A stretch of 63,875 nucleotides of DNA, the filler included, from Ministeria vibrans ATCC 50519 (lineage: Eukaryota; Protista; Filasterea): assembly GCA_943704425.1 (NCBI GenBank). It is 12 parts of 12 records of this genome, joined end to end, with 100 filler letters (N's around TTAATTAATTAA, not from the genome) between each part and the next. Parts side by side here need not be neighbours in the genome. Positions count along the whole stretch, not along the records: positions 6,500 to 17,167 come from CALSCP010001483.1; 11 more parts are not named here. One strand, 5' to 3'. A program made the translations under genes and the position numbers. Of this stretch, positions 6,500 through 17,167 are shown piece by piece. The stretch's first letter is position 1; each line of letters opens with the position of its first letter. A model generated the notes under the pieces. It had not been told where the DNA came from. It searched no databases and saw only the letters and a list, made by a program, of their open reading frames with translations.

Positions 6500-6533
<34 letters not shown>

Positions 6534-6572
6534 TCTTATTCACACTTCCTCTCTCCCGTCTGCGCTTTCCAG

Positions 6573-9500
6573 AGATCATGTTCCTGGGGCTCCTTGAGAA
6601 GGTACAGGATGAATTTGCGACGATCACGATCAGCGAGGACGGCACCATGACGTCGGTGAATCGAACGGCGATGGACTTGTTTGGATACACAACACACGAG
6701 ATGGTTGGCAAGAAAGTCAACATGCTACAGGTAGGTCGTGTGGTGTGGTGTGGTGTGGTGTGGTGTGGTGTGGTGTGTATGTATGTCTTTGTGGTGTGGT
6801 GTGTATGTATGTATGGCTTTGTGGTGTGTGTGTGTAATGCATGACTCGCACTCATCTTTTTATGTTTGTGAAGGCGGAGAGATATGCAGCGGCGCACGAT
6901 GGGTACCTGGAACACTATTTGCGCACCGGCGAACGTCGGGCCATTGGCCGACTGCGTCTCGTTGAGGGGAAGCGCAAAGATGGCTCTCTGTTCCCAATGC
7001 AGGTATGAGAGCAGAAAAAAACAACGTTGATTGCTGTGAACGCGTCGCTTTTGTTTAGTTGGCTGTGGAGGAGGACAAGTTTATAACGGGCGAGCGGTAC
7101 TTTCGGGGCATGATCTTTTCGATGGAGAGCTCCGACATGGATCCGATTATCAGTGGGGATGTGGCGACGGAGACAGTGCGCACCGCGAACAACTCGGCTG
7201 CTCTACTGTTTGGCTTTTCTAACACACACGCAATGGAGGGTCTCAAGATCACACAGTTGCTGCCGACCTTCTCGTGGGAGGGCGTCAAGGGTCACTCGTC
7301 GCTCGGCAGGATGATCCTGCCCGGGAGACACCAAGACGACACGCAGTTTCAAGTGTTTGTCATTGTCGAGGAGTACACGCTGGGCGGTGATCATCTCTTC
7401 AGTCTCAAGTGCAGGCACACATCACAGAAGAAGGTACGAATGGCTCTGAGTGACGGAGCGTGAGTGGTCAGTCTGATTCAGTGGAGATTTGCGTGATACA
7501 ACAGTGCATGTCTGAGTGAGTGTCTGAGATGGTGCATGTTTTAGCGGGTGTCTGAGTTAGTGGTCAGCGCGTCTTCAAATTAGAGTGTTTCAACTCTGTG
7601 TTTGAATCAGATGCTGAATCAATATGTTGAGTCACGTTGTGATTGAATCAGTATAATACGTTTTATTGGGTTTATTCGTTTTATTGCATTTTCACTTGCC
7701 CCTTTGAGTCNNNNNNNTCAGTATAATACGTTTTATTGGGTTTATTCGTTTTATTGCATTTTCACTTGCCCCTTTGAGTCCTTCGTCTACTCTGTTTAAC
7801 CCCTTTTGTTGCAGACTCAAGCGCGGTCTATTGGCGAAGGGGCACCACAGCAGCAACAATCGAGCCAGCAAAAGTCACCCTACCATGTTGATCTCGACAA
7901 GATTGGCCAGTACATCGGTCATTACCGTGTTGGAAAGGTAACAACTCCTGCCTTCCAAAAAAACATACAAAAAACGTCAAAATAAATATTTTTAAATCCC
8001 GTAGGTCATTGGCACTGGGTCGTGGGGCATTGTCATTAGCGCAACACACCGTCTGACGGGCAAGCTGGTCGCCATCAAGGCCATGCGCAACCCCAGCAAG
8101 GCCAAGCCGAGCGACCACTCGTCCGCCTCGTCTACCCAGCAGGGCACAAACTACCCCCCCGACGTCAACAGAGAGATCAAAATTCTCAAAACGGTACGAG
8201 AATGACACACACTAAAGAGAATCATTCTTATTTAATAATGTGTGACTGCTGTGTGTCTTTTTTTTTTTTTTTTTTTTGAATGTAGCTGTACCATCCTAAC
8301 ATTGCGTGTCTGTACGAGATCATTGAGACACCCGACACCGTCTTCCTTGTCATGGAGCACTGCTCGGGCGGTGAGCTCTTTGACTATGTGTGTCAGTATG
8401 AAAACGGCCTTGAAGAACACGAAGCGCGAAAGTACTTTCGGTACAGCTTGGACACAAGCAGTCTTCGTTTTATCTTACGATTATCATTGTCTTTTCTGTA
8501 GCGATGTGTTGGGGGCAGTGGACTATATGCACCACAAGAAAGTCATTCATCGTGACATTAAGCTTGAAAACCTTCTTCTTGACGCAGAGGTAAGGGGTAC
8601 TTTTGTATTGATTTCTGTACTCACAATTGATCTGCACGAATTGTATGATAGGGACATGCGAAACTCATTGACTTTGGCATGAGCAACTTTCACACCAACA
8701 TTGTGCGCATGTCGACCTTTTGCGGCTCACCCGCTTACACTTGTCCAGAGATCTTTATGGGAAAGCTCTATTCGGGTCCAGAGGTACGCATACACTCTCG
8801 ACGTGTTCACACAACGCATCGACTCAACACATTGCACAAGCTCTCGATTCACCCTCGAACTTTGCACACACACATGCACATGNNNNNNNNNNNNNNNNNN
8901 NNNNNNNNNNNNNNNNNNNNNNNNNNNNNNNNNNNNNNNNNNNNNNNNNNNNNNNNNNNNNNNNNNNNNNNNNNNNNNNNNNNNNNNNNNNNNNNNNNNN
9001 NNNNNNNNNNNNNNNNNNNNNNNNNNNCACTTGTTTCTTCCTCCTCCTCTCTCTCCCTTTTGCAATTATTCCTTTCGTACATCTTTGACGTATTCATTAT
9101 TCATACAATCAAACTTTGTTTTCTCTAGGTGGACATCTGGTCACTTGGCGTTGTGCTGTTTGCCCTTGTCTCGGGCTTCCTTCCCTTTGACGAGGACCCC
9201 CGTCGCATTCTTCGTGGCCACTACGCTCTCTCGCCACGTCTTTCCCCCGATTGTGCCGATCTTATTCGTTGTATGCTGGAGCCAAACGCATCAAAGCGCG
9301 TTAAAATTGATCAGGTGTCAACCACACCACAAACACACTCGCATCTCCCACAACTAAACCCATCTCGTTTTTTTTTTTTTCTCTCTCTCTCCTTTCCATC
9401 TTTCAAGATTATTGCGCATCCATGGGTCAATTTCCTGTCGCAACCCATTGTGCGCTTTGACGTCAATGTGTCCCCTCTGCCGCCCCCAAGCCAGTTCGAC

Positions 9501-10013
9501 AAGGAGATCATCATGCAAATGTCGCAGTTGGGCTTCCCACCCAAGGCCGTCAACAAGGCCCTTGAGGCCAAGGGGTTCAACCAGATCACCGCCACCTACC
9601 GTTTCCTCTACAGTGCCAAACAGAAGCGTATACACATGCTCGGTCACTCGCACCCGTCCTTGACCGACTCTTCCTTTTCTTTCACTTCTTCTGCACCCTC
9701 TGACGCCTCTGCTGCTGCCTCTGCCTCTGCACCCACCTCTTTTGTTACACACGACTCCGCCTGGCACCATTATCACACCTCGTCCGTCCTGCCCACCTCC
9801 CACTCTCTTTCTACCGGCGAATCCAACTCTCTCACCGACGAACTCGTCCTCTACAGCCAAATCGAGTCCCTCTACTCGCGCGCTGTCGCATCGCTTCCCT
9901 CCGCACCCCAGCCTGGCCCCCTCCCTTCCTCCCGCGTTGAGGCACATACTCGCATTGTCGACATGGTCACGCATCTTGCTGATACCCTCCAGTACCTTAA
10001 AGCACACCAATGA
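6573..10013 (+). CDS. Multi-PAS (FixL-like heme PAS) + MARK/AMPK-family Ser/Thr kinase + UBA; 5' end missing
   Basis: PAS '[69 protein letters not shown]'; second PAS 'ANNSAALLFGFS...ITQLLP'; kinase 'IGTGSWG', 'VAIK', 'HRDIKLENLLLD', 'DFG', 'TFCGSPAYTCPE', 'VDIWSLGV'; UBA 'DKEIIMQMSQLGFP...NQITATYRFL'. Confidence 0.88.
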
Positions 10014-10035
10014 AACATCTCCATTTTTATACGTA

Positions 10036-11136
10036 TTACATCTCTTTCTCTGCAATCGCTACTCCCTTAACCACACTTCGCTGTGCTCGTGCCAATGAGC
10101 CACGCGAGCTCTTCTCAACGCGCTTTAACACGTTTCCCGCCTGATGGATGGTGCAGCGTTCAAGTCGCCAAATGAGCGCGAAGTGTGCAAAATGTGCATT
10201 GAACACTCGCACAAATGCGCTGGGGACACTCTCGCTCGAAAGAATCACTCGATTGCCCTTGCCCGAACGTATCACCTACACAAAGTCGTCACGTGTAAGC
10301 CATGGAAATTCAAGCACATGGAATTGTCCATGGAAGACAAGGCACACACAGTCGTACGTTGAGGGCCATTCGACAAATGTTGATGGACAAGGCCGCAAAC
10401 GGAAACTCCTGAGCGTCACTCTGACTGATACGGAAGATTAGAGATGCACGGTACCGCATTTCCGGAGTGCCTCCAAGCAATCCCAAAAGCGATATCAGAC
10501 CCATGAGGCCCACTCCCCTCAAATCGGTCGTTGGGTCGTTGCCTGCTCACCCAATGGATAAAATTGAGCTACACTCTAACATTAATTTACAATTTTGACT
10601 TACCCTGAAATCCAATCTCAACCCAGTGTGGACCCACACGGTCAGGATCGGCAATTGCCAGAACATCGGGGTCTTGGAGCGGCGGGATTCGCCCCCTTTC
10701 GTGGCAGAGGGGCAGCGAAGCGCACAATTTGTACACGGTGACCAATATTCGCTCGTGTACAGCATGGCCGGTCTCGAAAGGCACCTTCCCCAGCGCGACC
10801 ATCAGGCCAAGATCATTCTCCAAGGGGTCTTGTCCGCCGAGAGTGGCCGCTGCACAGCAGGAGAGGCAACCCCGGTCGGTTGTCATGGCACTGGTGAACT
10901 CGTCGCGCGCCTGACCCTAAAACAGTGTATCGGGGCTCTTCTTTATAAGGGACGCGCCGTCGTGCATATCCTCTACAACGCGATACCTTCCACTGCAAAA
11001 GCTGGTCATTGGAAAGCCCTCTGAAGTGTTCGACTGCTTCTTCATATGAAATGAGTGGAGCAGTCGCACTCGTTCGGTTCCCCTCCAGCTCGCTTGAGAG
11101 ACTCCATTCTGAATTGGATCGCGAATCTTCATTCAT
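10036..11136 (-). CDS. ELMO-domain protein, ELMOD3-like ARF/ARL GAP (multi-exon)
   Basis: 'HERILVTVYKL...GPHWVEIGFQG/NDPTTDLRGVGLMGL...FPFAALSINI' is the ELMO/CED-12 domain signature. Confidence 0.85.
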
Positions 11137-11282
11137 GATATACCAGACTACCACTCTGCAGAGTCCAAGTGCCCATCAGCGACAGGAGAGCGACAGGGGA
11201 CACAAATGAGAAAATAAATAAACAAGTCGATTGAAATATTTTTTCAATTTTCATGGCAAAAAACAAATTAATTATATTCGAA

Positions 11283-12211
11283 ATGGAATGGTTTAAGGCG
11301 GCGATTGTGCCACACTCCAGCCCCATCGATTGGTGCGAAACCAACTACGAAGTGACCAGCTGGGTTGCTGAGTTTTGGAACACAACGTCGAATCTCCCAT
11401 TTCTCTTTGGTGGTCTCTACTAGTACGCCACGCGCACGCGATGCCTGCCCCATTCTTACCAACATTATCCGTAGCTTCTTCCACTCGCGCAAACATGGGC
11501 TTCCAATACACTTTCAGTGTCTTTTTCTCGTAATCGCAAAATGGCACGCATGTCAGTCAACTCATCCGCTGTCTCTCTCTCTCACTCTGCAGACTCTCAT
11601 CTTCATCGGCTTTGGCTCGGCCTACTTCCACGCCACACTGACACTGCTGGGTCAGCTCCTCGACGAACTCAGCATTCTGTTTGCCTTTCTCGTTGCCTTC
11701 AGTCAGCGCCTCCCTCTCCCCTTTGTGCTCGTCTCCGCACCCGTCCTCACCGTCACCATCATTGTCAGTCCAATCTTCTCTCCCATTGTCTTGGTCGTCT
11801 TTGGGTCCATCTCGGTCTACGTGATTGTCACCAGTGCTCAGAAGAACACGAACAAAGAGGTGAGCGAGACACACTAAGTGTTGTTGTACGTGTGCACTAA
11901 TGATTGGGAAATGTCTTCTTCTAACTGCTAACGTTTGCTGTTTGTGGTAGGCACGTCGTGCACTTTACACCTGTCTCATCTTGTGGGCACTGGCCATTTC
12001 ATCGTGGGCGAGCGAACGACTCGTCTGTGAGTATGTGCACAGGCTGCAGCTGCACGCTCTGTGGCACGTCTTTGTTCTGATGGCTGCCATCAATGCCATT
12101 TCGCTCGAAGCGTACTACCAGGGTGCCGAGGAGAAGCGTCAGCCGCGTCTTTTTGCGCCTTTTTCTGGCGTGGTTGTTCGCACTGAGTGGGCCGGCTCTA
12201 AAAACGTGTAG
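11283..12211 (+). CDS. ACER: Alkaline ceramidase (CREST family)
   Basis: 'SSPIDWCETNY...AEFWNTTSN', 'GSAYFHATL...LGQLLDELSIL', 'LHALWHVF'. Confidence 0.92.
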
Positions 12212-12442
12212 AATAAGTGTGTGTGTGTGCAGAGCCAGAGGGTTTGTTTGAGTCAGATGAAGAATTGTCCAATTGTCCAATTGTCATGGCCTCACGGGAT
12301 GCTATTGCGTTAAGTGTCTGCGTTAGTCTGGTGCATTGGGTCGGATGAGAGGGAGAAGAGAGGAAAGTGGAAGGTCGAAAAGTCGTATCAGTCAAAAGTC
12401 AAAACAATCAAATCATTTTTGACATTTCAATTTCTCGTGACG

Positions 12443-17029
<4,587 letters not shown>

Positions 17030-17118
17030 GTAAGCATGGCGACGACACAGACAGACAGACAGACAGACACACACACACACACACACTCTCTCTCTCTCTC
17101 TCTATCACTTTGTTTCTT

Positions 17119-17167
<49 letters not shown>

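Follow-up and report, generated by a model that had tools for sequence, protein, structure and literature searches.

The gene described here encodes a FixL-type heme-PAS domain and a eukaryotic Ser/Thr kinase of the CAMKL (MARK/AMPK-like) group in a single protein. It occupies positions 6573-10013 on the + strand of the window, by which we mean the whole stretch of 63,875 nucleotides (nt), filler included, taken from the genome of Ministeria vibrans ATCC 50519 (GCA_943704425.1). Its domains follow in the order FixL-type heme-PAS, degenerate and apparently heme-less PAS, Gln/Ser-rich linker, CAMKL Ser/Thr kinase, UBA-like segment and low-complexity tail. The gene is genuine and expressed, and it belongs to the nuclear genome of a heterotrophic protist. 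From its sequence we propose, at a probability of about 60%, that the product is a heme-based gas sensor, with O2 as the first candidate ligand, that modulates a CAMKL kinase which keeps its T-loop control.

A single transcript joins the PAS domains and the kinase

The gene lies on a contig of 10,668 bases that fills positions 6500-17167 in its entirety (6500 is its base 1) and belongs to a 29.7-Mb genome in 2,860 contigs. Read on the + strand, it consists of ten exons (6573/6575-6730, 6874-7002, 7059-7433, 7815-7937, 8005-8193, 8286-8440, 8502-8589, 8652-8783, 9129-9314 and 9408-10013) separated by introns of 56-381 nt, all of them GT..AG. At least 712 residues of the product are known. The features of the locus are as follows, with the supporting evidence in parentheses; HMM stands for a hidden Markov model of the FixL family, described below, and AF2 for AlphaFold2.

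6500..6572 (+): probable 3' end of an upstream intron, 73 nt with a T35 run, a pyrimidine tract and CAG; the gene's 5' part is absent, as the contig begins here.
6573..6730 (+): exon 1, N-terminal half of the heme-PAS, ending FGY.., with a possible start at ATG 6578 (Pfam PAS, E 1.6e-5; TIGR00229, E 3e-8; HMM 23-59).
6731..6873 (+): intron 1, 143 nt, inside the PAS, with a (GT)n-type microsatellite (sequence and RNA contigs).
6874..7002 (+): exon 2, predicted heme pocket with the F-alpha helix, FG loop and G-beta (PDB FixL matches; NCBIfam FixL; HMM 62-103).
7003..7058 (+): intron 2, of 56 nt, likewise within the PAS (spliced at GT..AG in three runs).
7059..7127 (+): start of exon 3, final two strands of the heme-PAS, LAVEEDKFITGERYFRGMIFSME (HMM 105-125; column statistics).
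7125..7433 (+): remainder of exon 3, second PAS-like domain (HMM 17-61 and 90-127; Pfam PAS_8, E 0.036).
7434..7814 (+): intron 3, 381 nt in the assembly, including a tandem repeat and a 7-N gap (joint 7433/7815 in three runs).
7815..7937 (+): exon 4, Gln/Ser-rich linker and start of the kinase, YRVGK (translation; RNA joints).
8005..8783 (+): exons 5-8 (8005-8193, 8286-8440, 8502-8589, 8652-8783), kinase core (Pfam Pkinase in each exon).
8784..9128 (+): intron 8, containing the gap 8883-9027 (8783/9129 spliced in three runs; contigs of the DNA run X3 end at the gap edges).
9129..9314 (+): exon 9, kinase subdomains IX-XI, VDIWSLG... (Pfam Pkinase 178-256; MARK2, E 1.7e-10).
9408..10013 (+): exon 10, end of the kinase, UBA-like segment (~9492-9638), Ser/Pro/Ala-rich tail and TGA at 10011-10013 (Pfam; AF2).

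An index search found the stretch carrying the gene in 20 sequencing runs from 8 studies. We compared contigs over 6860-10400 from three probable RNA runs (X16, X8 and X18, from three studies and under three organism labels) and from one DNA run (X3). The RNA contigs drop exactly the predicted introns and join all ten exons in one transcript, as a first-pass annotation of the window had proposed for the PAS and the kinase. GT..AG joints are present in the contigs of all three RNA runs at 7002/7059, 7433/7815, 7937/8005, 8440/8502, 8589/8652 and 8783/9129; 8193/8286 and 9314/9408 are contiguous in the RNA contig alignment, and at 6730/6874 the loose end of the RNA contigs before 6872 matches the 3' end of exon 1. 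The joint that connects the PAS to the kinase, 7433/7815, had been singled out beforehand as the splice to check and is found in three RNA runs. The X16 contig, 2529 nt long, starts 540 nt upstream of exon 2 and ends just beyond the stop codon; a transcript contig of X8 measures 1221 nt. Another X8 contig (7404-7684), at a depth of 3.9 versus 178, continues past the donor of exon 3 into intronic sequence and ends at 7684 in a run of A that the genome does not encode. This may represent a minor polyadenylated isoform, which would code for the PAS part alone and reach a stop 9 codons after entering the intron, or it may be noise.

Two N gaps fall within the locus. The RNA joint 8783/9129 places the 145-N gap (8883-9027) inside intron 8, so it has no effect on the reading frame, and the flanking exons continue in frame through ...LYSGPE/VDIWSLG..., where kinase subdomain VIII normally passes into IX. 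In X3, the DNA contigs run collinearly with the genome and break off at both edges of this gap. The 7-N gap lies inside intron 3, within a tandem repeat of about 120 nt (7589-7781) that is its source; a metagenome contig (L013) and X3 contigs loop back there.

On the 5' side, RNA contigs reach 89, 382 and 557 nt past exon 1. The mRNA is therefore longer at this end, either by coding sequence, with an N-terminal extension of up to about 185 residues, or by a 5' untranslated region spliced on ahead of ATG 6578. An earlier PAS before exon 1, which the first-pass annotation had raised as a possibility, would lie beyond the contig start at 6500. The N-terminus is accordingly either incomplete or starts at ATG 6578, and sequence 5' of 6500 is absent from the assembly, not from the organism.

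Between the assembly, the four runs and the metagenome contig, which is 98.5% identical, the exons differ by five synonymous changes and one Asp-to-Glu change, and the introns carry several substitutions and indels. The Asp-to-Glu change, in exon 6, is at 8336, where X8, X16 and X3, but not X18, have G for the C of the assembly. At 8330 all four runs (X8, X16, X18 and X3) have G for A, which is synonymous. These two differences are probably assembly errors or strain differences.

The heme-PAS domain keeps the near-invariant residues of the FixL family

Profile, PDB and structure comparisons of the gene were made exon by exon. Exon 2 encodes 43 residues and has seven matches among 177,635 PDB sequences, all of them FixL heme domains. 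The best is Sinorhizobium meliloti FixL (SmFixL; 1D06, E 1.4e-11), with which 26 of 42 residues (62%) are identical. In NCBIfam, the top match of exon 2 is the FixL equivalog sens_FixL_Rhizob (E 2e-10), and exon 1 also touches FixL and DosP models. We built a local FixL-family HMM from 150 FixL-type domains that came out of the representative-protein search described below. Exon 1, exon 2 and the first 23 residues of exon 3 map to its positions 23-59, 62-103 and 105-125, which is an unbroken PAS with two introns inside. The peptide on which the first-pass annotation had based its FixL-type assignment, starting at FGY.. and including exon 2 residues, is present in the sequence with its His codon at 6895-6897, and the assignment is upheld by both the PDB matches and the HMM fit.

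None of the near-invariant positions of the family has changed: over the 150 domains these are a His (99%), an Asp (93%), two Tyr (92-95%), Thr-Gly, Ile-Gly, an Arg (100%), Arg-Lys-Asp-Gly and Phe-Pro. The His at 6895-6897 aligns with the proximal His194 of SmFixL and His200 of Bradyrhizobium japonicum FixL (BjFixL). The Arg at 6955-6957 aligns with SmFixL Arg214 and BjFixL Arg220, the distal residue that stabilises bound O2 in FixL. Both residues had been predicted to be retained, and they are, except that the distal Arg is the second of IGRLR and not the one directly after IG. Equivalents of SmFixL Ile210, Leu230 and Val232 are kept as well, the Leu and Val at exon 3 positions.

Residues 23-124 of exon 3 form a second PAS-like domain. 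Two pieces of it fit the FixL-family HMM (17-61 and 90-127); it has no HDxY, and about 11 residues fewer in the F-alpha segment. A search of PDB sequences with exon 3 found no match for this domain, and a single-sequence AF2 model of the exon, at a pLDDT confidence of 40, gave no usable fold. In agreement with the earlier prediction of a degenerate second PAS, we read it as a probable heme-less duplicate of the first.

A complete CAMKL kinase follows the PAS domains

Exons 5-9 each match Pfam Pkinase, at consecutive profile positions from 7 to 256. The kinase is catalytically complete, with GTGSWG, VAIK, HRDIKLEN and DFG all present; an insert of about 25 residues separates VAIK from helix C, and the APE motif reads CPE. 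Its T-loop, STFCGSPAY (8712-8738), aligns with TFCGSPPY of MARK3 and keeps the activation Thr, which is phosphorylated by upstream kinases in the AMPK-related family. When PDB entries are ranked with the exons of the activation segment and C-lobe, MARK1-4 come first (E ~2e-10), followed by Snf1/AMPK and then by SIK/BRSK/MELK. For the same exon, PASK (3DLS) scores E 3.9e-5 versus E 2.3e-10 for MARK3. By these comparisons the kinase is of the CAMKL (MARK/AMPK-like) type and not PASK-like, as the first-pass annotation had also concluded. Pfam finds no histidine-kinase domains in the gene; the exons 3' of the PAS are Pkinase.

In exon 10, AF2 models helices at 29-40, 45-55 and 57-77 (pLDDT 65-79). 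With this model Foldseek places UBA domains and the kinase-UBA chains of MARK, SIK and MELK at the top, but at E >1, so that a UBA domain after the kinase is weakly supported by the modelling. Pfam detects no KA1 in exon 10, and the tail is Ser/Pro/Ala-rich and of low complexity. Of the earlier description of a UBA without KA1, then, the missing KA1 stands and the UBA is the less secure part. The same annotation held that a gas sensor had replaced the usual regulation of the kinase. We disagree on this point: with the T-loop Thr kept and a UBA-like segment still present after the kinase, the sensor seems to supplement that regulation.

Relatives and precedents

A representative search with exon 2 against 1.84 billion proteins gave 3,797 matching proteins, from which we examined the best 150 by summed score. 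None of these 150 FixL-type proteins matches the kinase exons of the fusion. Repeat proteins filled the best 150 of the 3,797, and neither the gene's own cluster nor any orthologue is among them. P0001-P0044 have 2,400-3,600 residues with 10-13 tandem FixL-type heme-PAS repeats, and in P0001 Pfam finds only PAS families. Nine mid-sized FixL-type proteins were scanned, and all nine are histidine kinases. The closest single domains among the matches listed are 65% identical and come from bacteria or metagenomes, Sulfuriflexus and Planctomycetota among them. A word-index search with exon 3 returned only the window's own fragment, scans of metagenome DNA and protein found nothing, and the ESM Atlas gave only a weak bacterial PAS cluster. 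As it comes from the best 150 of 3,797 and from exon-level searches, the absence of orthologues is weak evidence.

A full-text literature search found no description of a heme-PAS fused to a eukaryotic Ser/Thr kinase. A general survey of PAS domains, in which FixL and DosP make up one cluster (cluster 3), describes no such fusion (Xing et al. 2023, PMC10468136). We regard the CAMKL output as new for a heme-PAS sensor, and the heme-PAS equally as a new regulatory module on an AMPK-related kinase.

The gene shares one half each with two well-known groups of proteins. FixL (S. meliloti 1D06/1EW0; B. japonicum 1DRM, 1XJ2) has the same PAS subfamily, His194, Arg214, the pattern HDGY..Y..TG..IG..R..RKDG..FP and Leu230/Val232. 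However, the output of FixL is HisKA/HATPase with FixJ, whereas that of the fusion is a eukaryotic Ser/Thr kinase, and the fusion has spliceosomal introns, no DIT linker motif, His at Arg200 and Ala at Ile209. MARK/Par-1, Snf1/AMPK and other CAMKL kinases include the best PDB matches of the output and share the T-loop Thr of xxTFCGSPxY and a UBA-like segment directly after the kinase. Unlike them, the fusion carries N-terminal PAS sensors, the ~25-residue insert and CPE for APE; in contrast to MARK and AMPK, it lacks KA1 and the AMPK tail that binds the beta and gamma subunits.

PASK and yeast Psk1 and Psk2 resemble it in architecture, with a PAS N-terminal to a CAMK-like Ser/Thr kinase, and regulation within one protein is likely in both cases. 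The PAS of PASK is heme-free, however, PASK has no UBA, and the fusion kinase is nearer to MARK. A FixL-type heme-PAS is also found in another eukaryote, Chromera velia, where A0A0G4HHW9 (P0046) has four such stretches at 57% identity, but with a histidine kinase as output and not a CAMKL Ser/Thr kinase. The FXL1 and FXL5 domains of Chlamydomonas were reportedly shown by Murthy et al. in 2012 to bind heme and O2; we know of no defined kinase output for the FXL proteins. The heme-regulated eIF2-alpha kinase, HRI, is a eukaryotic Ser/Thr kinase set by heme. Unlike the fusion it senses heme supply, via non-PAS sites, and it differs in fold, kinase family and logic.

A proposed gas switch and its alternatives

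Building on the exon structure, the single transcript, the domain families and the conservation of pocket and catalytic residues, we infer heme binding, a ligand, a direction of switching and substrates. Heme b would be held by the F-alpha His (6895-6897), and the FG-loop/G-beta Arg (6955-6957) would stabilise O2 or another diatomic gas on the ferrous iron. Ligand binding would shift the FG loop and beta-sheet, and the second PAS would relay this movement to the kinase. With no DIT motif and an apparently disordered linker, the signal would more likely travel by altered docking or dimerisation than through a coiled coil. The signal would then tune a kinase that also still depends on T-loop phosphorylation. 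By analogy with FixL the deoxy form is expected to be the active one, which would tie hypoxia to a kinase of the energy/polarity type.

Several points weigh against this proposal. At the position of the propionate-binding SmFixL Arg200 the fusion has His (6913-6915), which occurs in 17% of the 150 family domains, and at that of Ile209 it has Ala (6940-6942), which occurs in 6%. Arg200 variants of SmFixL autoxidise more readily and signal differently, and O2 binding by SmFixL depends on Ile209 (PMC10765370). The heme-PAS of the fusion has Lys for the conserved Asn in QNV, and DIT, the linker motif that couples the PAS to the histidine-kinase helices, has given way to FSME. The second PAS scores weakly, with PAS_8 as its only Pfam match (E 0.036), as does the UBA-like segment (Pfam UBA, E 0.01, below the cut-off; UBA_SIK3, E 0.019). 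The 5' end of the gene is cut by the contig edge, and no orthologue was found in the best 150 of 3,797, the exon 3 word index or the metagenome DNA and protein scans. To our knowledge, there is no known transduction path from a PAS domain to a CAMKL kinase.

The altered pocket bears most directly on an alternative in which the PAS does bind heme, with NO, CO or the iron's redox state as the signal, and the kinase is a sensor of nitrosative or redox stress. The two positions that are changed, Arg200 to His and Ile209 to Ala, both handle O2 in SmFixL. Arg200 variants autoxidise in air, and the I209M variant has lost its oxy form yet still binds CO (PMC10765370). The His/Ala/Arg pattern of the fusion (EHY...RAIGRxR) is nevertheless seen again in P0084, a metagenomic histidine-kinase relative, and since it recurs there we take it as a natural variant, one present in bacterial FixL-family kinases. 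Moreover, the distal Arg, O2-stabilising in FixL and found in 100% of the 150 domains, is kept, as are the equivalents of Leu230 and Val232. We consider a nitrosative or redox sensor unlikely, though worth bearing in mind. SmFixL R200H has normal oxy, deoxy and CO heme spectra despite its increased autoxidation (PMC10765370). Because these spectra are normal, the near-invariant pocket residues are kept and the His/Ala pattern is natural, heme binding by the fusion PAS is likely, and O2 is the first candidate for its ligand.

A heme-free PAS has a somewhat smaller chance of being correct. The domain would then serve for dimerisation or for sensing a small metabolite, as in PASK, and its FixL-like residues would be inherited leftovers. 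The second PAS next door has clearly lost its heme pocket, and PAS domains on eukaryotic kinases usually have no heme. A relic, however, is not expected to retain every near-invariant pocket residue, the strain differences in the exons are almost all synonymous and the kinase is not PASK-like.

Finally, although the assembly is fragmented, with the two N gaps in the locus and a contig edge at its 5' end, an artefact (bacterial contamination, chimeric assembly or two genes read as one) is highly improbable: two spliceosomal introns lie inside the PAS, an argument against contamination that the first-pass annotation had already made, both N gaps are intronic, in three studies single spliced contigs begin before exon 1 and reach the stop codon (2529 nt in X16), the 98.5% identical metagenome contig spans exons 1-3, and the neighbours, such as strumpellin and ceramidase, are ordinary eukaryotic genes.

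Neighbouring genes, other putative sensors and the host

Downstream of the fusion gene (10014-17167), a gene with one intron at 10274-10355 converges on it from the minus strand, and the two overlap at the 3' end of the kinase transcript. Next come an alkaline-ceramidase-like gene (~11365-11874, +) and strumpellin, a WASH complex subunit (~12.4 kb to the contig end, +).

Other putative sensor genes are found elsewhere in the genome. A second FixL-type heme-PAS gene on contig C795 (21774-21890, -; locus L010, 4676-5592, -) keeps the His, the Arg equivalent to Arg200 and the distal Arg (MHEFFMKRY...VIGTSRCVEG). Its domain contains one intron and is 45% identical to the fusion PAS; no output domain was found nearby. 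On C1296 (1-3600, -; locus L011), a FixL-family PAS scoring 76 bits against the FixL-type HMM keeps the His and has Tyr for the distal Arg. By eye we read this gene as of NADPH-oxidase/ferric-reductase type (HPFTISS), with a cupredoxin-like segment before it. As the only other strong PAS match in the genome, near a contig end, the C1296 PAS was considered as the missing 5' end of the fusion gene and rejected, as it belongs to a different gene. C969 (4951-8784, -; locus L014, 3451-7284) carries a gene without introns for a hybrid histidine kinase, 1277 residues long, which resembles a cytokinin receptor and comprises CHASE, PAS, HisKA, HATPase and receiver domains; a word-index search with it gave bacterial matches only.

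Several features of the genome bear on the identity of the host. We looked for psbA and LHC genes in the genome and found none, and the mitochondrial cox1 has 13 in-frame TGA codons. The genome holds three integrin-beta loci and two T-box loci, which suggests an opisthokont relative of animals and fungi. In a word-index search its HSP70 is 70-73% identical to animal HSP70, with none closer. A near-identical HSP70 (P0393, in the same 90%-identity cluster) occurs in MMETSP0661, filed as the dinoflagellate Alexandrium margalefii, which probably carries transcripts of the host protist as a culture contaminant. The fusion gene itself is present in 'algae metagenome' runs. We infer that the host is a heterotrophic, opisthokont-like protist living in algal cultures.

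Implications

Heme-PAS sensors are well-studied bacterial switches, and AMPK and MARK are central regulators of energy and polarity in eukaryotes. If our proposal is right, the fusion shows a bacterial gas-sensing module wired to a eukaryotic kinase, and it would offer a compact kinase under O2 control that can be genetically encoded, for use in research and as a basis for tools. The HIF pathway is missing in sponges, ctenophores and unicellular outgroups (PMC5800844), and the fusion would be a direct sensor of oxygen in a lineage from which none has been described. At somewhat less than even odds, it may be the first eukaryotic Ser/Thr kinase to be switched directly by O2 on a FixL-type heme-PAS, and thus a one-protein pathway, independent of HIF/PHD, from oxygen to phosphorylation in the AMPK/MARK family.

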